Assembly (NCBI GenBank): GCA_024137785.1
Contig: JAHRHZ010000282.1
Coordinates: 557,138 to 621,137 of the forward strand
Direction of reading: 5' to 3'
From: Ginglymostoma cirratum
Taxonomy: Eukaryota
Length of the DNA: 64,000 nt
A program made the translations under genes and the position numbers. Numbering within the stretch: position 1 is the first letter of the stretch; each line of letters begins with the position of its first letter. The notes beneath the pieces are model-generated. The model saw only the letters and a list, made by a program, of their open reading frames with translations, made no database searches and was not told where the DNA came from. Shown one piece after another: positions 4,203 to 64,000 of the stretch.

Positions 4203-7200
4203 CTTCGTTCAGAAACTGCAGGACGTTGTCATTGTTGTCATTGTGGAAGTTGGATTTTGCAACACATTTAAATGGGCCCTCATTTATTCTGCATGATGTG
4301 CTTGAGAGGGACAATTGCATTACAACATACAACTTACTTACAGCTCGATAGACAAAGAGATTAACTCACTTTATCACGTTTTTCAACAAGAAGAATGATT
4401 AAATTTGACTTTTGGAACTGCTTCGTTGTAATTTCCTTGGGTCATCCAACTGCACGAAAAATGGTGTTGAGTCTTTATCAATGGATCCACTGTTCGTAGA
4501 CACTGAGATGAGACCCCGTTTCAAAACTTTATTTTCCGTTTGTTAGTTCTGCCATCTGCATGTTTAATTTTGATTTCAAGCGTTAACTTACTTCAGCTTT
4601 TCCATTCGTTCTTATGTGTTTTCATCCTTAAAATTTTAACTTTGTTTGGACATTTCCGTAAATTTACAGCTGAACTATTGGAAAGCATTGTTTGCAAATA
4701 TGGGCGATTAATATGGTGGGGGCTATGAAATTAACTTTTGGTCCCGTTGAATCTGAAAAATCCTTCATTTATTCAGATTAATCACAAGTGCAGGAAGGTA
4801 TTCAATTGTTGAAGTTTTTGTTCAGAGCTTCTGTTGCAGGAACAATTGACCAATGCCAATGTTTGATATAACTAGAGAAACGTCAGTTTAATAAGTAACT
4901 TGAAGATGGCTTAAAAATATACTGCCAAGTGCATCAGCAACTAAGACTTGTTTGATGTAATGCAGAAAAGTTCGTATTTTAGTATGATAGCAAATGAGAC
5001 AAAGCCAACTACAGTGTTCTCAGGGACAGACGTTGTGAAACACGAAAAGCGACATATAACATTTCCGTAACAGTTAATACAGCTCAATGTGCAAGATGAA
5101 CCAGGGCACGGTCGAAACCAGTAAATAACATGTGATTGTATAGTGCCACCGACACGGTCTAGGCAAAAAGCAAATAAGATAGAGCCCAGTTTAATACAAG
5201 CAGAGACATGGTGTAGCTTATTGTAAACAAAGACAGGGTGTAGCATAATATAAGTGAAATAAGATAGAAATGATAAAGTGACGTGAAACATAAACAATGA
5301 TGCATATGCTACCGCATTAATTTATGCAGACTTCTGTCTCACGGAAATAAACAGATGGACATTTTGAGTGAAAACTCTGAAATGCCATAAGATGTGACAG
5401 AAACAGAGATAGAAGCTGATTCAGTAATCATTGTGATTTGATCAGTCGTTAGATAACCATTAATTTCTAAAGCCATTAATAAAATCATGTACATTTATTA
5501 AACGCGTGTTCAGTCTGCTCATCAAGGAGGCATGGACTAGTTCAGTAACAATCATGGCCTGGCGAAACAGTAAGAGGGACAGAGAAAACTTAAATATATA
5601 GTAAGTTAGATGGTGCACAACCACAGTTTGGATCCATTCAACGTTCTAACCCTGGCATTAACATTAATTCCAATAAGGAATTACAATTGTGAAAGAGATA
5701 GAGTTCGTACTATAATATTTAGTACAATGGAACATACGAACGAAGGCTCAGACGTAAAAACATATTAACGTGCTAGGCATTAGCAAAATAAAAATGAGTT
5801 CTGGTAACTCACTAACTAAGAAACAGCCACATGTATAATTCAAATAATTTGCGTTTGTTCCCAAAAGTATCAAGATCGATTCATATGCTAGGTGAAACTC
5901 ATCACGTTCAAATGTTCTCCAATTTTGCAGTGCATCATGTAGATTGTGCATATTCCTATTATTGAGTGTCTGTTATGAAGAGAGTGATCTTTTCTGTGTG
6001 CGGTGAACGTCGAGGTAACTGCTTTAAACAAAATGGCATCGAATGTCTTGAGTCTCATTGGAGTTCAATTCATTCAGGGAAGTGGGGACATTACATTAGC
6101 TACAAGAAGTTCAACAACTATTAAACGAATTGGCAGAGCCGGCTCGAGGTTGTAATGTATATCCGTATTTATAATTTTTAAGATAGTGCATGGTTCATTC
6201 TCCAACTGCAAAAAGGACCAGCAGCTATTAAGATCTTTCTAAAGAATTTGAAACCGTTGTATCGCTGTTCTTGAGAAAGCACGGAATGTGGAGGTGCCTG
6301 AATTTAAACGTTTTATATGATACACGGATTAAGTGAAGCAAATTCTGAAAATCGTTATTCTGCGTGACTGCACGACATAGAGCTCTCAATACCGAAGGTC
6401 GCCAAAAGAACATGAAGACATATTAAGAAAAATGTACTCATCCAAAGGGACATTATAACAGAAAACAACAACTGATATATGGAGAGGGTGGAACAGGGAT
6501 AATACTGTATGGAGAAAGGAATAAATGGGTACATGTCTCCAAATTGTTAATATATCACTATACGTAGAGCAGAGAGAGGCTCATGTGATGTATAAAAATA
6601 AGTGCTGTCAAATTTGGCAAATATCCTGTTCCTGTTCTGAACTAATGTATAATATGGAGTTCAGAGAAAGCTAGGCCCGTAGAACACGGGAGAGAATCAA
6701 ACAATGGATTGGAGGGAATTTCAGCTGTCAGAGACGCTGAGAAGGCAGTTCCCAGTGAGTAACAGTAAAACCACAGTGGAGCCTGCACAAACTGAGATCA
6801 ACTGACAGCTGAGAGACTTTGGGACAAGCTCCCACGGTGGCACAAACCACAAACAGAACATAGTAATTGTAGAAATACAATGAAATGAACTGTGGAATTC
6901 CAATTAATTTGAAATCAATGATGTCGAGCCTACTAATGGCTGAAAATAGAGAAAAAAACTGAAACACGAAAAGAACATTTCGTAAAGTTTTATTCTGTCA
7001 GAAGTATCTGTTTCTGATAGTCAGTGTTCAATTTAATGAATTTATGCTTTTGGCAAGATCTTCCTGGGAGCAGTGATAGAACGCAACTTGGTCATTCCTG
7101 GAAACATGATTCTGGAAATTAAATGTCTCGCCGATGTGGGAATGCTTACTTGAATTTTCTTTCTTAAACAAATAAGAAGTGAAAATTAAAATCATGAAAT

Positions 7201-7641
7201 CATACTACACAGAGCAATTTTATTCAGCTATGCATCTGTACCATTCCCATAAAAGTGGAAACCAATCAGTCCCCAAACCCTTGCTGTTTCTCAATAGTGC
7301 AACACAGATTGCCTGTTCCAATATTTATCCAATTAAAATACAAACGTTATTGATGAATATGCTCATAATACCCATCTCTTGTGTAAAATGTAACGCGCCA
7401 TCTTTACTGATTAATTTACATTAATAGTGTGTAAAGTCGTAGCAACATATATAAGACGTTAGTTTACAAGAAACACAGAATTCTTCCTATGAATAAGACG
7501 CTTATTCTATAGACAGTGGATTGCTAAACAATAGTTGCCATTTACTCACGGAGAGTTTGGCGTCAACCGATCCCGAACACCCTCCATCCGCAATCCACAA
7601 ACCCTGGCCTCAAAGTCCAGCTCTACAAACCTCTGCAAATA

Positions 7642-7984
7642 TGGTTTTGTACAGATCCTTCTGTGTCACTATTTCTGCAATCCCTACCATGTTCAGGTTC
7701 TTGTACAGATCTCTCCGTGGTCTGTACCACTGTGTGTCTGCAATTACACCATAATCTTTTTTTTTTTTAATACAACTCTCTCCCAGTTCTGTCTCACTGC
7801 ATTGGTAATCCCCACCATGCTCAGGTTCTTGTACAGCACACTCGTGGTCTGTATTACTGTGTGTCTGCAATCCCACCATAATCAAACTTTTATACAGCAC
7901 TCTGCCAGTTCTGTATCACTGCATTGGTAATCCCCACCATGTTCACGTTTTTGTACTGTTCTCTCCGTGCTCTCTATCTCTGTG
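7642..7984 (-). repeat. Tandem array of about 6 RSS-containing units (~60-65 bp period, alternating A/B types)
   Basis: RSS-like units at 7946-7984, 7885-7923, 7824-7861, 7763-7801, 7696-7734 and 7642-7673, separated by related ~21-28 bp linkers containing AATCCC(C)ACCAT. Confidence 0.85.
7946..7984 (-). other. 23-RSS of the supporting V-delta
   Basis: CACAGAG-ATAGAGAGCACGGAGAGAACAGT(23)-ACAAAAACG. Confidence 0.92.
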
Positions 7985-8294
7985 TGTGCCGAGATCCGAA
8001 TACTTGCGCAGTAATAAACAGCAGAATCAGCGTGTTGAATTTGAGAGATCATTAACCGATAGATTTTCGCCCCAGGATCAATAGATGCAGACACCCGTCC
8101 CCTCGCAGCATTTTCTTTATTCTTCTCTCCTGCAGTGTCTCTTTGAAGGAGATACTTCAGAGCCTGTCCTGGGGTTTGACTGTACCAGTAGAGTGAGTAC
8201 TGACAGAATCCTGAATATGTACAGCTTAGAGTAACGGTGTCACCAGCAGCAGAAGTTTGTACAGGCAGACCCTGGGACACCAGGGAACTGGAAT
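7985..8294 (-). CDS. Leaderless supporting TCR-delta V exon of NAR-TCR
   Basis: Acceptor CCCACAG at 8295. The phase-1 frame DSSSLVSQGLPVQTSAAGDTVTLSCTYSGFCQYSLYWYSQTPGQALKYLLQR...DSAVYYCASIRISA has canonical C/W/C plus a CDR1 Cys and is in frame with the J donor. No intact leader lies upstream. Confidence 0.93.
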
Positions 8295-8743
8295 CTGTGG
8301 GACGACACTGAACATTATTAATTATTCAGATACAGTTTACACAGGGAAATTGTAGTTAACCAAAAAATCGTTCTGATTTCTTTGACAGTTAACTTTGTCT
8401 ATAGTCCATTTGAACCTGTCCTCTTTTATCGAACCATAAACTGCTGAAGAGATAAGGTGACATTTTCTTTCATAAGTTGCCTTCGTATGATATGGAATGA
8501 ACTGCCAATACGATTGGTTGGAACTGATTGAACAATAAAATGGGTAATGGACAACAGATGAACAGGCAGAAAACGCAGGGCTATGGGGAGATAACAAATA
8601 CAGTAGAATCAGTTGAAATGAACTCTAAAGAGAACTGTAACCACACGACTGCTGAATGCTATCCTATATGATTCTGTGGTGTACTTTATATTTCTTGTTC
8701 TATTTACTGTGGTGAAACGCTAACCCGAGGGAACTTCTCATAC

Positions 8744-8803
8744 TCGTTGAGACTATTTACAAAAACAGCTGTCCAAAAGTAACCCAACAGAGATGTGCCT
8801 CAA
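8744..8803 (-). pseudogene. Probable decayed leader exon upstream of the supporting V-delta
   Basis: TTG in place of ATG, then RHISVGLL, a +1 frameshift, WTAVFVNSLN and a GTATGA donor-like site. It resembles the leader at 61454-61514 (VIGLFWTA). Confidence 0.45.
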
Positions 8804-10785
8804 TGCACACTAAGATCCAATATGAACGAAGTAATTGATCAGAACCAATTAGGTCAATCGTTTTCTAAACTTTCCTCTGTACATGAAATTCTACTAGATT
8901 TTCGATCTACTTGTTTGCTTTGTTTCTTTTTTTAAAATCAGATCCATTTGTTTTATGTTTGCTTCTAACGGTAATTATTTCAATTTAGTATTATTTTATT
9001 TCTGCATTTTCTTCGCCCCTTTTTCTTTTCTGGCGATCGTAGATACCTATCCCAGATGTCTCTCAATACTCGGTTGGGATCAGACTGCACTAATTGTATG
9101 TTTTTTTTTTGTTGCTCATTGGGAATCCACTTCCAGCTCTCTCTCAATTACAATTCCTCGCATCAATTTATTGACTCCTGGATATTCTGGATGGAGATCT
9201 TTATAGTTTTCTCGGAAAGCTGAAGATAAGGATAGTTCATTCTACCCAACCGATTTATGGCTGTGTATATAACTCAACGTCCACTCCCACGCGAACTCTA
9301 ATCAGCGTTATCTATTCCGTACGTTGAGTAGATGTATTTGGTTCTTCTTCAGTTTTCTGAAAACTCCATAAATGACTCAATGCATTGTTACATATTTAGT
9401 CTGTTTCGCGGCAAGTTCCACATTCCACCACGCTTATTGTTCACTTGTTCAAGTTCGTGAGTTGATTTGTTTCGTTAGTGAACATGATGTAATAATGGCC
9501 CTTTGCTCGTGGTTCAGTCTCATCCATCCCATTCACTAGATCATGGTATATAAGATTTCTATGAAGCCACATTGCACTTCTCTGTTTCTCTGGCAAGACA
9601 GCCAACTTTTAAACCCCCACTGTTTTCTGAGGTCCAGAATGCCACAGACTCAAAGCAATTGTTTGATTGAATTATTTGCTCTCATCCCAATTCTATGTCC
9701 TAAGCCTTAATCTCTAAGTGTGGCCACTGTATGGACGTTTTATTCTCGAGTATATTGCCCCAGATGCCTATCCCTTAATAATCGTATATGTTCAAATTAG
9801 ATCACTTTTCCTTCTTCTAAGCGCTATGTTATGTAGCTTAGACTTCACAATCGCTTCACAAAGGACAACAACTTTATCTCAGGAGATTGCCTGATGAATC
9901 TTAGCTGCACTTGTTCCAAAAAAAATCGATTAGAGAGGAGACGTTTATCCACCATTTCCTTCTCTATATAAAGCTCACTCTGGTGAGGATTGTCTCTTCG
10001 ACAATGCCCCAGAAATTGTGACATATTCCTCTCCCTTTTGATGTATCACTTCTTGCTGGTTCTAAATGGGCATTCTCCCAGTTTGCATCTTTTCCCTTAA
10101 GCAGTTACCTTACAACAAATTGATACCTCAAAACATCTACATTTTAAAAAAGTGCTTACAATTGCACATTTAGGTCTGAGTTTGGAAAAGTGAGAAAATG
10201 GTTCGTTATATCAAGACATATATGAAAGTTGTGTAAAGAAATGTCAAGCCAATCATTCTTATCACAGGTTCCCCAAAAAGGAAACTTCATCAAGGCATAC
10301 AATTGGATCTGTTAGAATTGACTTTCGATGAATGATGCTTCCAAATTTCTGGTCAGACAAAAATTTTTTTGTAACTTTTCAATTCCGGGGCCTTATCTGG
10401 ACTTCAAGATTTGCTCGGTACAGTACTTTGTGTGCCTCTTCCCGTGACCTAAGCAGTCCTCAGTCACTGGTAAAGTCTTGAATTACCTGGTGTCGTTAGT
10501 GTTCCTAGTGTCGGCACTCTCCACCATATTGATGGGGTCCCACTACTGACCTGTAAAAAATGTCCCAGGTGCATTGACACTGCCGACTTTGAGCCCGGCG
10601 TGACAATACTTTCTTCGGGACAAATCAGGACTCGACTTCCCTATTCTGCAAACTATTTGGAAACTGTGACAGAGCCGATTACTTCCAAAAGTTTTGTTTC
10701 AATTTCTTTGCAACTGAAGGTCATAATAATAAACTGAACATTAACTGACACAGTCTATAACAAGGTGAAGTGAAGATTCACTTAC

Positions 10786-15999: not shown

Positions 16000-17200
16000 A
16001 AAGGTCAGAAATCAGACGACACCAGGTTATAGTCCAACAGATTTGCTTGAAAACACAACCTTTCGGAGCCTCGCTTCTTCTTGAGATGTAAGTGATACAG
16101 ATAGTATCAGACTCAGAATTTAAGATTAAAAGATCAAAGTGTCACACCATTGATGAGAATGCACTAAATAAACCCAAGATGTTGAATCTTTAGTCAGCCA
16201 GAAGATTTTAAATGATTAATATGTGTGTGCAAATTCCTGAATTCCATTGAAGGCCCCGTGCTATGAGGACTAAAGCTTTTATCAGTGTAAAGAAGAAATG
16301 ATATTTTAGATGAGACAATGCATGGTAAGTGTGAGAACGTGTTTATAATCTGTTTGTGAGTTGGTTTGGGGTAAGACTGGTTTTATTTCGAAAGTAGCAA
16401 TTTATAAAATGCCACATTGTCTGACTGACGATAAATTCTGTGCTTATTGAACAAAATAGAATGCATCTGCAAATAGAAGTTCACNNNNNNNNNNNNNNNN
16501 NNNNNNNNNNNNNNNNNNNNNNNNNNNNNNNNNNNNNNNNNNNNNNNNNNNNNNNNNNNNNNNNNNNNNNNNNNNNNNNNNNNNNNNNNNNNNNNNNNNN
16601 NNNNNNNNNNNNNNNNNNNNNNNNNNNNNNNNNNNNNNNNNNNNNNNAAAGAGAGAGTGGGAGACAACGTGTGTGTGTGTGCATGTGTGTGAGAAAGAGA
16701 CCATGTATAGTGTGGGATAGAGAGTGTATGTGAGAATGTGAGTGTGTGTGTGTGGGGAGATCGAGTCAGAGGTAGAGAGAGTGTGTGCGTGTATGTGTGT
16801 GTGTCTGTGTTTCTGTGAGCGAACGAGAGGGAGAGTGCTTGAAAAACAATGTGTGTAATGGAGAGGATCAGCGCAGTTTGTGTATGTGAGAGAGAGGGAG
16901 AGAAACAGACTGTGTTTATGAAAATAGACGGTACATGTAATGAAGAGGATCTGCGTGAGAATTTGTGCGTGTGAATATGTTTGTGTAAATGAGTGTGTGT
17001 GTGTGAGTGTTTAGCGTGGAGGGGCCACTTGCAGTGCGACATGAACCCAAGATCCCGGTTCAGGCCAGTCCTCATGGTTTGCAAACTTGGCTATCAGCCT
17101 CTGCTTGACGACTCTGCATTGTTGTGTATAACGACTTCCGCCTTGGAGAAAGTTTACCAAAGATCCACGATGAACGTCCTTGACTTTAAGGTCGAAAACA
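16000..17200 (-). mobile_element. Penelope-like element 3' fragment with internal CA-rich tract (spans the assembly gap)
   Basis: GIY-YIG C-terminus LQGG..TQQ..QRLIAKF/GLNRDLGFMSH. Its 3' end is homologous to 52730-53240. Confidence 0.75.
16485..16647. other. Assembly gap (N run)
   Basis: Continuous run of N. Confidence 0.99.
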
Positions 17201-42238: not shown

Positions 42239-42545
42239 GACTTTGTCGTACAGATTCTGTCTCACAAACACCGGCCACAATCACAGTGAATGAAGGGGAA
42301 GATGGCCCGTTATTCTGTAATTACACAGCTACATCAAGCAGTAGTCCATACTTGTTCTGGTACCGTCAGCATTCCAGCGGTTCCATGGAGTATGTGCTAA
42401 AGAGAAACCAATATACCAGGAAAACAGAAAGACTTCCAGGAGACAGGTTTTCTTCGGAGTTTGATCATGTGAACCGGACTATCCAATTGAAAGTGTTGAA
42501 CACAGAACTGACAGACTCCGCAGTGTATTACTGTGCACTGTACCC
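42239..42545 (+). CDS. Intact TCR alpha/delta V exon
   Basis: Acceptor TCTTACAG, then GLCRTDSVSQTPATITVNEGEDGPLFCNYTATSSSSPYLFWYRQHSSGSMEYVLKR...DRFSSEFDHVNRTIQLKVLNTELTDSAVYYCALY with canonical C/W/C. Confidence 0.93.
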
Positions 42546-42584
42546 CACAGAGATTCAGAACTGGGCTGACCCCATACGAAAACC
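42546..42584 (+). other. 23-RSS
   Basis: CACAGAG-ATTCAGAACTGGGCTGACCCCAT(23)-ACGAAAACC. Confidence 0.92.
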
Positions 42585-44506: not shown

Positions 44507-45028
44507 TAGAGCATAGAACAATACAGCGCAGAACAGGCCCTTCGGCCCTCGATGTTGCGCCGACCTGTGATCTAATCTAAGCCCACCCCCTACACTATCC
44601 CTTTATCATCCATATGCTTATCCAAGGACTGTTTAAATGCCCTTAATGTGGCTGAGTTAACTACATTGGCAGGCAGGGCACTCCACTCCCTTACCACTCT
44701 CTGAGTAACGAACCTGCCTCTGACATCTGTCTTAAATTTATCACCCTTCAATTTGCAGCTATGCCCCCTCGTACTAGCCGATGTCATCATCCTCGGAAAA
44801 AGACTCTCACTGTACACCCTATCTAATCCTCTGATCATTTTGTAGGTCTCTATTAAATCCCCTCTTAGCCTTCTTCTCTCCAATGAGAACAGGCCCAGGT
44901 CCCTCAGCCTTTCCTCATTAGACCTTCGCTCCAGACCAGGCAACATCCTGGTAAATCTCCTCTGCACCTTTTCCAATGCTTCCACATCCTTCCTGTAATG
45001 GGGCGACCAGAACTGTACGCAATATTCT
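44507..45028 (-). mobile_element. Young 5'-truncated CR1 LINE with open ORF2 C-terminus
   Basis: EALEKVQRRFTRMLPGLE...RLRGDLIETYKM...TRGH...TQRVVREW, followed by a 3' UTR tail. Confidence 0.88.
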
Positions 45029-56968: not shown

Positions 56969-57436
56969 GGTTTTTGTGCAGGGATTGCTGTATCTACAGC
57001 AGTGTGGGTGATGTGGCACAGAAATACACGGCACTGTTGTAGAGAAAAGCCATAGCAACATTTAAAGGAAACGTATTGTTTTCTTTGCACAAATTAGCAA
57101 ATTAGTCTTGAAAATCTTGAAACGTTGCTCCCCTCCCCGTTATGCATGCTTCTACTGAATATCTCGGAATTTCCCCAGGATACTGAATACACCAGAACAC
57201 AGTTCGAACAGAATTTGTCGAGTAACTGAAGTTCAGTGTTATGTTCTGTCGTTCCAGAAACATTACTTCTTGTAGATTCTGGAAAACTGTATCTTCACCA
57301 TTGGTCCCTGCAACAAAGTACAATCTATCAAATGTTTGGGAGAGAATACAACTCATGGAGCAGACAATGAACATTTAAACGTAGACTCACCACGCAGCAC
57401 AACCAGTATTATTAGTAAGGAGCAAAGGGGGCACAT
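56969..57436 (-). pseudogene. TCR alpha/delta V pseudogene (leader 57436-57391, V exon 57307-57007, RSS 57006-56969)
   Basis: Leader MCPLCSLLIILVVLR with GTGAGT donor. V reads GTNGEDTVFQ...ITLNFSY (Cys to Phe)...VFWCIQYPGE...QD*...NSAVYFCATS with an in-frame TAA. RSS is CACACTG-22bp-ACAAAAACC. Confidence 0.9.
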
Positions 57437-57984: not shown

Positions 57985-59200
57985 ATAGAACACAGAGCAT
58001 AGATTAGTACACCAAAGTACAGGCGCTTCTGCCCACAATGTTGTGCCGACCTGTTATCCTACTCTAAGACCAAACTGCCCTGCATACCGCACATTTTACT
58101 ATCATCGATGTGCCTATCCAAGAGTCCCTTAAATGTGCCTAATGTATCTGACTCCACTATCACCGCTGGCAGCGCATTCCACTCACCCACCACTCTGTGG
58201 GCAAAAACCTAGCTCTTACATATGCCCTGTACCTTCTGTTAATCACCTTAAAATTATGCCCCCTTGTAATAGTCATTTATACCCTGGGAAAAAGGTCTCT
58301 GGCTATCCACTCTATATGCCTTTCATTATCTTGGACACCTCTATTCAGTCACCTTTCATCCTTCTTTGCTCCAAAGAGAAAAGCCCTAACTCCCTCAACC
58401 TTTCCTCATAAGACCTGCCCTCCAGCCAAGGCACCATCCCTTTGTGGGATCTTTGGGCTTCGACCCGAGGATCCCTCTGTTCCTCCACAATGCCAAGAAT
58501 CCGCCCATTAACCTTGTATTCTGCATTCAAATTCGACCTTCCAAAATGAATCACATCCCACTTTTCCAAGTTGAATTTCATCTGCCACTTCTTTTCCCAG
58601 CTCTGCATCCTGTCAATGTCCTGTTGCAACCGACAACAGTCCTACACACTTTCCACAACTCCACGAACCTCTGTGTCATCAGCAACCTTACTAACCCACC
58701 CTTCCAATTCCTCATCCAGTCATTTATAAAGATCACAAACAGCAGAGGTCCCAGAACAGATCCCTGCGGAACACCACTGGTCACGGAGCTCCAGGATGAA
58801 AACTTTCCATCTCCTATCACCCTCTTTCTTCTATTGGACCAACAATTTTGTATCCAGGTAGCCAAATTTTCCTGGATCCAATGTTTCCTTAATTTCTGAA
58901 TAAACCTACCATGGGGAACCTTACCAAACGCCTTTTGAAAACCCATAAACACCTCATCCACTGCTCTAACTTCGTCAATGTATTTTGTCACATCCTCAAA
59001 GAATCCACTACGACTTGTGAGGCATTACCTGTCCCTCACAAAACTATGTTGACTATTTCGAATCAAACTGTGCTTTTCCAAGTAATCATAAGTGCTATCT
59101 CGCAAAATCCTTTCCAAAAATTTGCCCAACATAGAAGTAAGACTGATTGGTCTGTAATTACCAGGGTTAACCCTATTCCCTTTCTTCAACAAGGGAATAG
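57985..59200 (-). mobile_element. CR1 LINE fragment with internal deletion
   Basis: [12 protein letters not shown]...[22 protein letters not shown]; [11 protein letters not shown]; SYEERLRELGLFSLE. Confidence 0.88.
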
Positions 59201-61964: not shown

Positions 61965-63390
61965 AGGTTTTGGAGTAGATTTATAGCTCGAGTTGTGGAT
62001 GTTGAGTTGGTTGGCTCGGCAAGCTGGTTTCTTGTTTCGCAGTCTCTTCGTTACCATGCTGGGTAACATCCGCAGTGCAGCCTCCGATGAAGCGTCGGTG
62101 TGTTTTACCGCCTGAATTTTAAACTCTGGAGTCCATTGAGTTGGATTGCCTCATTTCCGGTTTTCCCTTGTAGTGGAATGTGTACGGGATCAAGTCCAAT
62201 GTGTTTATTAATAGCATGCTTCGTATAGTGCCAGGCTTCTAGGAATTCTCGTGCCTGTCTCTGTCTAGCTTGTGCCAGGATTTTGGTATTGTACCAGTCG
62301 AAATGGTCGTTCTCCTTGTCCATGTGGATTGAGATGAGTCAGTATTGATCGTGTCATTTTGTAGCCAGTTGTTGCTCATGTACCCTTGTTGTTAGTTTCT
62401 TTCCGTTTGTCCGATGTAGTGTTTCTCACAGTCTCTGCAGGGAATCTGGTAGATGAAATTCGTCCTGTCCATGGCGGGGAGCGGGTCTGTAGTTGTCGTA
62501 GGGTTGACGTGGGCTTGTGTGCCACTCTGATGCCCAGCAGTCGTAGGAGTCTTGTGGTGAGTTCTGATGTTTTCCTGATCTAGGGTAGTGTGATGAGTGT
62601 GTTGGGGCATGTATTATGTTCCTGGTGTTGTTCGTGTGGGCATCTTCTGACTCAGTTTTTTGGATATCCATTATCCTTGAAAACCTGGAAGAGGTATTCT
62701 TCTTCTTGGAGTAGTTCCGTGTTGCTGCAATGTGTTTTTGCCCGTTTAAATAGTGTTTGCACGCAGCTTCGTTTGTGTGTGCTGGGATGGTTGCGATTGA
62801 AGTACAGTACCTGGTCCGTGTATGTGGCTTTTCCGTGTGCTTTCGTTTGCAGTTCCCCATTTGTCTTGCGCTCTACCATGACGTCCAGGAATAGGAGCTC
62901 TTTGTTCTTCTCCCCCTCACTGGTGAATTTTATTCTGGTGAGCGTGTTGTTTATAATTATGCGTGTCTCCTCTAATTTGGTCCGTTTAATGATGACAAAG
63001 ATATCGTCCACGTAGAGTATCCATAGTTTAGTTTGGATTCGTGGAAGGGCCGTCCTTTCTTGTCTTTGCATCACTGCCTCTGCTATGAGTCCAGAGATAG
63101 GTGATCCCATGGGTGTCCCTTTGATTTGTTCGTATGCTTGGCCGTTGAAGGCGAAGTGGGTAGTGAGTCATTGGTCGAATAGTTTGAGCATGTTGTCTGT
63201 GGAGGTGATTTCACTGGGGTCTTCCTGTTGTTCCAATAGTGTTGCCATTGTTTTCCTTGCTAGTTTTATGTCTATTGAGGTAAATAGGGCAGGGACATCA
63301 AAAGATATCATGGTTTCTTCATCGTCTATCCTTATGTCTTTGATGAAGTTGAGGAATTCTTGGGCTGAATGGATTGAGTGGGGTGACTTG
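61965..63390 (-). mobile_element. Penelope-like retroelement (RT plus GIY-YIG endonuclease), 5'-truncated
   Basis: ISFDVPALFTSI; MGSPISGLIAE...YVDDIFVII; YQIPCRDCEKHYIGQT; AREFLEAWH. Frameshifted. Confidence 0.9.
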
Positions 63391-64000
63391 TCACCAGGTC
63401 TAGCCTGCATGTGACTCCAGGCTCACAACCATGTGGTTGACTTTTAACTGCCCTCTTTGCAATTAGGGTTTAGCAATAAATGCTGCCTAACCAGCAAAGC
63501 CCTAACCTTGTTAATGTATAAAGGGGAGAGAAAAAGATGCTTTGCTGTGAGATGGTTAAAATCCTAAATTTTAAATCCCAAAGGATTTTAGTGAACCAAC
63601 TGGAATTCTCCTGACAACTGTTTCGTGTTCATTATTAATTCTTAATCCGGTATGCTTTTGTTGATTTCAATTCAACCATAGCATCATTCGAATTTTTTTT
63701 CCGAGAAAGTTAGCTTGCCGCTGGATTATTAATACAGCGATAATACCACGAGGACATAGCCTCCTTTTATGGTCCTGAGAAAGTTGAAATTTATATATAT
63801 GATGTCAGAGATACTGACAGTTAAGTTTAAGGTTGAGTACAGTGATTCAAGAAATGGGATCTGAGGATATGTATTCTGAAATGGAGACTTTGTGGGGCCG
63901 TAGGGATTTTAGTGTGAAGTGGAATTAATGGACTTGTTGTGCCTGGGCAGTACGGGAGGCATTGAAATTCAATTTGAATTCTATAAATATCTGGAATTAA

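Follow-up and report, generated by a model that had tools for sequence, protein, structure and literature searches.

Tandem 23-RSS units behind the supporting V-delta of a NAR-TCR cassette in Ginglymostoma cirratum

The stretch analyzed here, 64 kb of Ginglymostoma cirratum DNA, is called the window below. Reading of motifs and ORFs revealed a complete NAR-TCR cassette with all of its features on the minus strand. The doubly rearranging NAR-TcR cassette (Criscitiello et al. 2006) is summarised in passages of PMC1845163 and PMC12227049. The following elements were assigned:

12084-12042, minus strand: NAR-TCR leader exon, from ORF and sequence reading
11910-11615, minus strand: NAR V exon, from ORF and RSS pattern
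11614-11576, minus strand: 23-RSS of the NAR V, from the RSS pattern
10874-10836, minus strand: 23-RSS of the NAR J, CACAGTA/23/ACAAGAACC
10835-10786, minus strand: NAR-TCR J, with splice donor gtaag at 10785; RNA-like contigs show its end joined to the V exon by splicing
7985-8294, minus strand: supporting (NAR-TCR-associated) V-delta exon, from sequence, ORF, homology and RNA-like contigs

The supporting V-delta is located downstream of a NAR V that carries a 23-RSS and of a J with a splice donor; the distance from the NAR J to the supporting V-delta exon is about 2.5 kb. The exon has no leader and begins at the splice acceptor cccacag/at (8300-8293). Furthermore, its CDR1 contains a cysteine (SGFCQY; LSCTYSGFCQYSLYWY). 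The missing leader and the CDR1 cysteine are named as features of NAR-TcR-associated TcR-delta V genes in a passage of PMC1845163. When compared with the NAR-TCR chains predicted for Carcharodon carcharias and Mustelus asterias, the product of the exon showed 65-70% identity to their V-delta half.

Expression of the cassette was traced in RNA-like contigs of an organism denoted B (runs X10 and X11). These contigs were at least 99% alike to the window, with coverage limited to 7995-8295 and a single mismatch, G>T at 8058. Beyond 8295 they carried the NAR J end (about 10815-10786) in reverse complement. Because the NAR J end adjoins the V exon at 8295/8294, the contigs correspond to spliced mRNA joining the NAR J to the supporting V. 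They are direct evidence that a two-V chain is transcribed and spliced from this cassette or from an allele nearly identical to it. A sequence-only reading of this DNA had already taken the V-delta for a NAR-TCR supporting V, and the lack of a leader, the CDR1 cysteine, the position downstream of the NAR V and J and the J-to-V splice all bear this out.

V segments are taught as carrying one RSS. Behind the supporting V-delta exon on the minus strand, a unit of about 61 bp, made up of a 39-bp 23-RSS and a linker of about 22 bp, is repeated head to tail 5.5 times. Two unit types, A and B, alternate and give a dimer period of 122 bp:

7642-7984, minus strand: whole ladder, from Tandem Repeats Finder (TRF), repeat search, unit profile and unit alignment
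7946-7984, minus strand: unit A1, the V-proximal 23-RSS, CACAGAG/23/ACAAAAACG, abutting the V coding end; linker 7945-7924
7885-7923, minus strand: unit B1, TGCAGTG/23/ATAAAAGTT, without CAC; linker 7884-7862
7882-7884, minus strand: TGA in the V reading frame, inside the B1 linker
7824-7861, minus strand: unit A2, CACAGTA/22/ACAAGAACC, with a spacer one base short
7763-7801, minus strand: unit B2, TGCAGTG/23/ATTAAAAAA running into a poly-A expansion, without CAC
7696-7734, minus strand: unit A3, distal, CACAGTG/23/ACAAGAACC, with a perfect heptamer
7642-7673, minus strand: unit B3, truncated, AATAGTG/16/ACAAAACCA, with 7 nt gone from the spacer

Direct reading of the minus strand agreed with every factual statement on coordinates and motifs in the sequence-only reading. 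That reading had described an array of same-orientation RSSs behind the V with CAC in the A units and none in the B units, a distal A unit whose heptamer is better than that of the V-proximal unit, and distal joins that take in the TGA at 7884-7882. The heptamer of A3 is indeed the perfect CACAGTG as against CACAGAG in A1, and A3 as a whole shows one mismatch to the consensus RSS pattern. The ORF in the V frame (7882-8280, 132 aa) passes through A1 and B1 and stops at the TGA. A1 and A2 are 123 nt apart, an in-frame distance, and A1 and A3 are 250 nt apart. Cleavage at either of the two distal A units would leave the TGA in the coding end, and the join would then be non-productive. Additionally, the heptamer and nonamer variants of the NAR J 23-RSS are exactly those of A2, and the spacers of the two signals are unrelated.

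The array was recovered by repeat statistics. TRF reported 7679-7987 with a period of 122 in 2.5 copies, 81% matches and a score of 381, together with a 61-bp sub-period. When the five full units were made into a profile and the 64 kb were searched with it (nhmmer), all five were recovered at E-values of 2e-18 to 1e-11, so that head-to-tail copies were present above chance; no other match to the ladder unit in the window had an E-value below 0.7. The 23-RSS pattern with at most three mismatches matched the window 7 times as compared to 1.0 expected, and 0 of 100 shuffles reached 7. No Rfam match was obtained on 6800-8800. One ordinary V in the same window served as a control:

42286-42545, plus strand: ordinary alpha/delta-type V with one 23-RSS at 42546-42584, CACAGAG/23/ACGAAAACC

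No array was found behind this V; its single RSS is followed by unique sequence. The heptamer of this RSS is the same as that of A1, and the start of its spacer, ATTCAGAACTGGG, resembles the spacers of the B units. A derivation of the 22-bp linker from the V coding end (YYC...) was also considered, but the linker aligned to the last 46 nt of the V no better than shuffled sequences (282-1771 of 2000), and this origin was rejected.

Several further features were observed in the window. Right after the ladder, at 7631-7544 on the minus strand, two tandem 28-nt units in J orientation have the form of 12-RSSs; they read GGTTTGTAG/12/AGGCCAG and GGTTTGTGG/12/GGGTGTT, and their heptamers are decayed. 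Next come a J-like stretch, TTCGGGATCGGT (F-G-I-G), an in-frame TGA and GTGAGT. The combination of FGxG and a donor was found twice in the window as compared to 0.07 expected. The J-like stretch looks like an unconstrained relic, since a contig of a related organism, denoted A, differs from it at 9 of about 54 nt. The spacing of about 385 bp from the V to this stretch recalls shark cluster-type loci. An ORF at 57102-57374 (minus strand) contains V-domain-like motifs (...NITLNFSY...WCIQYPGE...) and possibly represents a V fragment or a pseudogene. The minus-strand ORFs 44590-44985, 58345-58991 and 62652-63410 are reverse transcriptase- or retroelement-like and presumably belong to scattered transposon fragments. 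At about 16500-16700, an N run (an assembly gap or masked sequence) is flanked by CA/TG-rich simple sequence.

Which units RAG may cut was judged by mismatches and spacer length. A functional RSS strictly requires the CAC of the heptamer, as stated in a passage of PMC12711392. CAC is present in A1, A2 and A3; B1 and B2 (TGC) and B3 (AAT) are without it and hence cannot be cut. A1 (23, ACAAAAACG), A2 (22, ACAAGAACC) and A3 (23, ACAAGAACC) likewise have A-rich nonamers and spacers of 23 (±1) nt. The nonamer ACAAGAACC of A2 and A3 has G at position 5 and so departs from the purine-A/T-purine rule set out in a passage of PMC12711392; the identical nonamer is present in the NAR J RSS of this expressed cassette. 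Judged by their motifs, A2 and A3 are plausible RAG targets whose products would be non-productive.

Actual usage was visible only through the RNA-like contigs. The X10 and X11 contigs break at 7995, about 10 nt short of the V coding end, as expected from the junctional diversity of joins made at A1. Read-through from the V into the ladder was not found in the RNA-like contigs, which are assembled and drop rare variants. This sole evidence on usage points to A1, and it is indirect as regards RAG cleavage at that site.

The sequence-only reading had named an array confined to this copy among the outcomes that would count against it; homologous ladders were found in contigs of organism A and in a Mustelus-like ENA contig, and the array is thus not confined to this copy. 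The organism A contigs (runs X1 and X9, from different studies) were 85-95% alike to the window and colinear with the ladder. They map to 7300-7742, 7798-7869, 7843-7949 and 7925-8205 with about 93% identity; 31 of 443 and 17 of 281 bases differ, which corresponds to about 6-7%. Colinear placement of contigs from a diverged locus indicates that organism A shares both the flank and the order of the units with the window; this support comes from short-read contigs, with 7743-7797 (B2 linker and poly-A) unbridged. In organism A, an extra C behind 7842 gives A2 a spacer of 23 nt. The ladder and the V drew more organism A contigs than the unique flank (7600-7990), and loose ends of these contigs showed variant units, e.g., the nonamer ACAAAAACT followed by GAAGATGGTGGAATTA, as expected with several paralogous ladders.

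A protein search with the V-plus-ladder ORF (132 aa) matched just three proteins, namely P0001 from Carcharodon, P0002 from an ENA contig and P0003 from Mustelus. P0002 is a 219-aa ORF on a contig of 1007 nt; its V part is 89% identical to the supporting V of Mustelus asterias, and its reading continues for 100 residues past the V. When the ladder-only ORF (7613-7900, minus strand) was compared with 1.84 billion representatives by exhaustive phmmer, P0002 was the sole match (E = 7.9e-13). By BLASTP the two ladders were colinear over 79 residues, with A2-B2-A3-B3 of the window pairing with units 2-5 of P0002, which has one additional V-adjacent unit relative to the window copy. The ladder part of P0002 as a query of the protein search found only itself, and an ORF on the plus strand across the window ladder had no protein match. 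JGI metagenomes gave no match to the tandem-RSS pattern or to the V-delta alignment, a blank without weight, as shark DNA seems to be absent from these metagenomes.

Back-translations of the P0002 protein were scanned, allowing at most one impossible base per site. They contained exactly five sites compatible with CACAGTG/23/ACAAAAACC, at nt 349, 410, 471, 532 and 593, in a strict 61-nt period. Shuffles gave a mean of 0.007 sites, and 0 of 2000 reached five. The P0002 unit that matches the B type reads H-S-D (CAY AGY GAY) as compared to C-S-D/E (TGC AGT GA.) in the window. A B-type unit is thus still compatible with CAC in P0002, and the loss of CAC is specific to the lineage of the window.

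Conservation was compared between signals and the remainder of the units. The sequence-only reading had set equal substitution in signals and spacers beforehand as an outcome that counts against its proposal, and within the array this outcome was found: pairs of A units showed 0.17 differences per site in heptamer and nonamer and 0.20 in spacer and linker (p=0.68). Across all five full units the values were 0.40 in the motifs and 0.28 elsewhere (p=0.005, from pairs that are not independent). This higher motif divergence results from the shared change of CAC to TGC and from the decayed B nonamers, and its direction is opposite to constraint. Signs of decay include the two substitutions shared by B1 and B2 that turn CAC into TGC, the degradation of the B nonamers to ATAAAAGTT and poly-A, the 7-nt deletion in the B3 spacer and the 22-nt spacer of A2. 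The units differ from one another by 18-20%, as compared to a distance of about 6-7% to organism A; hence, the internal duplications predate that split, and there has been no homogenisation since.

Apparently, the array in the window is old and slowly decaying, and its distal units seem to be under no RSS-specific constraint. Some features speak against pure decay. All five units of P0002 are still compatible with CACAGTG/23/ACAAAAACC, which is more than pure decay would lead one to expect, in a comparison of little power; A3 retains a perfect heptamer and a 23-nt spacer, and the A2 spacer of organism A has the full 23 nt. A hand count of same-frame unit pairs in P0002 gave a hint of fewer motif changes, which was not significant.

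We consider it somewhat better than an even bet (roughly 55%) that the ladder goes back to an old RSS duplication that has been inherited, with A1 alone working productively at this copy and the distal units as passengers. The 23-RSS of the supporting V-delta together with 22 bp of its downstream flank would have been duplicated in tandem to give the 61-bp unit. This unit would have doubled first into the A/B dimer, and the 122-bp dimer would have been amplified afterwards. The array would then have been inherited along with the NAR-TCR cassette family; since it travels with that family, it is seen behind related supporting V genes of other cartilaginous fishes. At this copy, productive joins of V-delta to D/J would be made from A1 only, and joins at A2 or A3 would add 123 or 250 nt containing the in-frame TGA. 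This reading builds on the anatomy of the array, its homology to ladders elsewhere, the lack of excess motif conservation and the transcripts that end at the natural V end. From these we infer an origin by slippage or unequal crossing-over and no selected function. The anatomy given by the sequence-only reading was retained; among the explanations that it had put forward side by side, RAG concentration, a decoy role and serial re-rearrangement are candidates only, and neutral slippage fits this copy best.

The same array might also act as a RAG landing pad or back-up that was selected as such. Same-orientation 23-RSSs with A-rich nonamers would raise local RAG binding or the capture of scanning RAG, and the second rearrangement would go efficiently to the supporting V, in preference to the 23-RSS of the NAR V lying upstream. 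A-rich nonamers are linked in a passage of PMC12711392 to nonamer function and nucleosome repulsion, and those of the B units are still A-rich. Furthermore, the ladder is common to diverged copies and species and absent from the ordinary V in the window, and the RSS-compatible units of P0002, five out of five, keep their exact 61-nt spacing. We nevertheless regard a landing pad as rather unlikely: there is no excess motif conservation in the array, half of the units are without CAC, and inheritance with the cassette alone would account for the restriction to one family. A wider proposal, held just as tentatively, is that selection has maintained the ladder across elasmobranchs as a cis-acting device found with the doubly rearranging NAR-TCR chain alone, by which RAG would be steered or metered at the supporting V. 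Such a device could operate by capture of scanning RAG, by competition with the NAR V 23-RSS for D-delta or by fixing what share of the joins is productive.

A role of the ladder as a decoy or attenuator appears improbable. Cleavage at A2 or A3 would then lead to dead, TGA-containing joins and lower the NAR-TCR yield per cassette, for which A3 is by sequence at least as good as A1, the TGA lies in frame and the nonamer ACAAGAACC recurs in the NAR J RSS of the expressed cassette. However, the RNA-like runs contained no contig leading from the V into the ladder, the loss of CAC in the B units speaks against maintenance of signal quality, and it is difficult to see why waste should be selected for if two thirds of joins fail anyway. 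Serial re-rearrangement, in which a distal first join would leave A1 and A2 intact and a later attempt would move toward the V, is permitted by the geometry, with all units in one orientation and proximal units surviving a distal cut; it would need a fresh downstream 12-RSS as a partner, none is visible in the 64-kb window, and we think this course very unlikely. An assembly artefact or a slippage private to this copy is hardly credible. No contig bridges 7743-7797, but colinear contigs of organism A came from several studies, a homologous ladder is encoded by the unrelated ENA contig of P0002, and a unit divergence of 18-20% is unlike that of a collapsed or expanded assembly. Inherited duplication with distal passengers is the reading we prefer.

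No published description of such an array was found in full-text searches of the literature, as the sequence-only reading had also stated; an earlier mention in the primary NAR-TCR papers is possible. Compared with known systems, A1 resembles the conventional single 23-RSS of TCR alpha/delta V genes in that it adjoins the V coding end directly and has a CAC heptamer, a spacer of 23 nt and an A-rich nonamer; ordinary V genes have one such signal, whereas here the signal and 22 bp are repeated 5.5 times in the same orientation. A2 and A3 are without a coding segment, like the orphan RSSs of deleting elements (kappa-deleting element/RS, deltaRec) and the cryptic RSSs of receptor revision, and their use would likewise inactivate the locus. 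Those elements, however, occur singly, at a distance from the V, and are documented as being used, whereas the ladder consists of tandem copies of the signal that belongs to the V itself. With minisatellites that have higher-order repeats the ladder shares the head-to-tail arrangement, the dimeric A/B period, unit-specific indels and a poly-A expansion; it differs in that its unit is a functional recombination signal and in that it is old (18-20%), colinear between diverged loci and without rapid turnover. The locus otherwise agrees with the described NAR-TcR doubly rearranging cassette: it has the leader, the NAR V, the J with its splice donor and then a V-delta that lacks a leader and carries a cysteine in CDR1, and contigs showed the splice from J to V. 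A multiplied RSS behind the supporting V was not found in the descriptions of this cassette.

If the distal units are passengers only, the ladder still documents how long duplicated RSSs can survive, and it cautions annotators that the best-scoring RSS behind these V genes need not be the one in use; if a selected device proves true, it is a natural multi-RSS competition array. The oldest lineage to have V(D)J recombination would then offer a natural experiment, an RSS array passed down with a single specialised V family, on whether quality, position or scanning direction decides which of several neighbouring signals RAG picks. It would also bear on how the two-step assembly of the NAR-TCR stays orderly.
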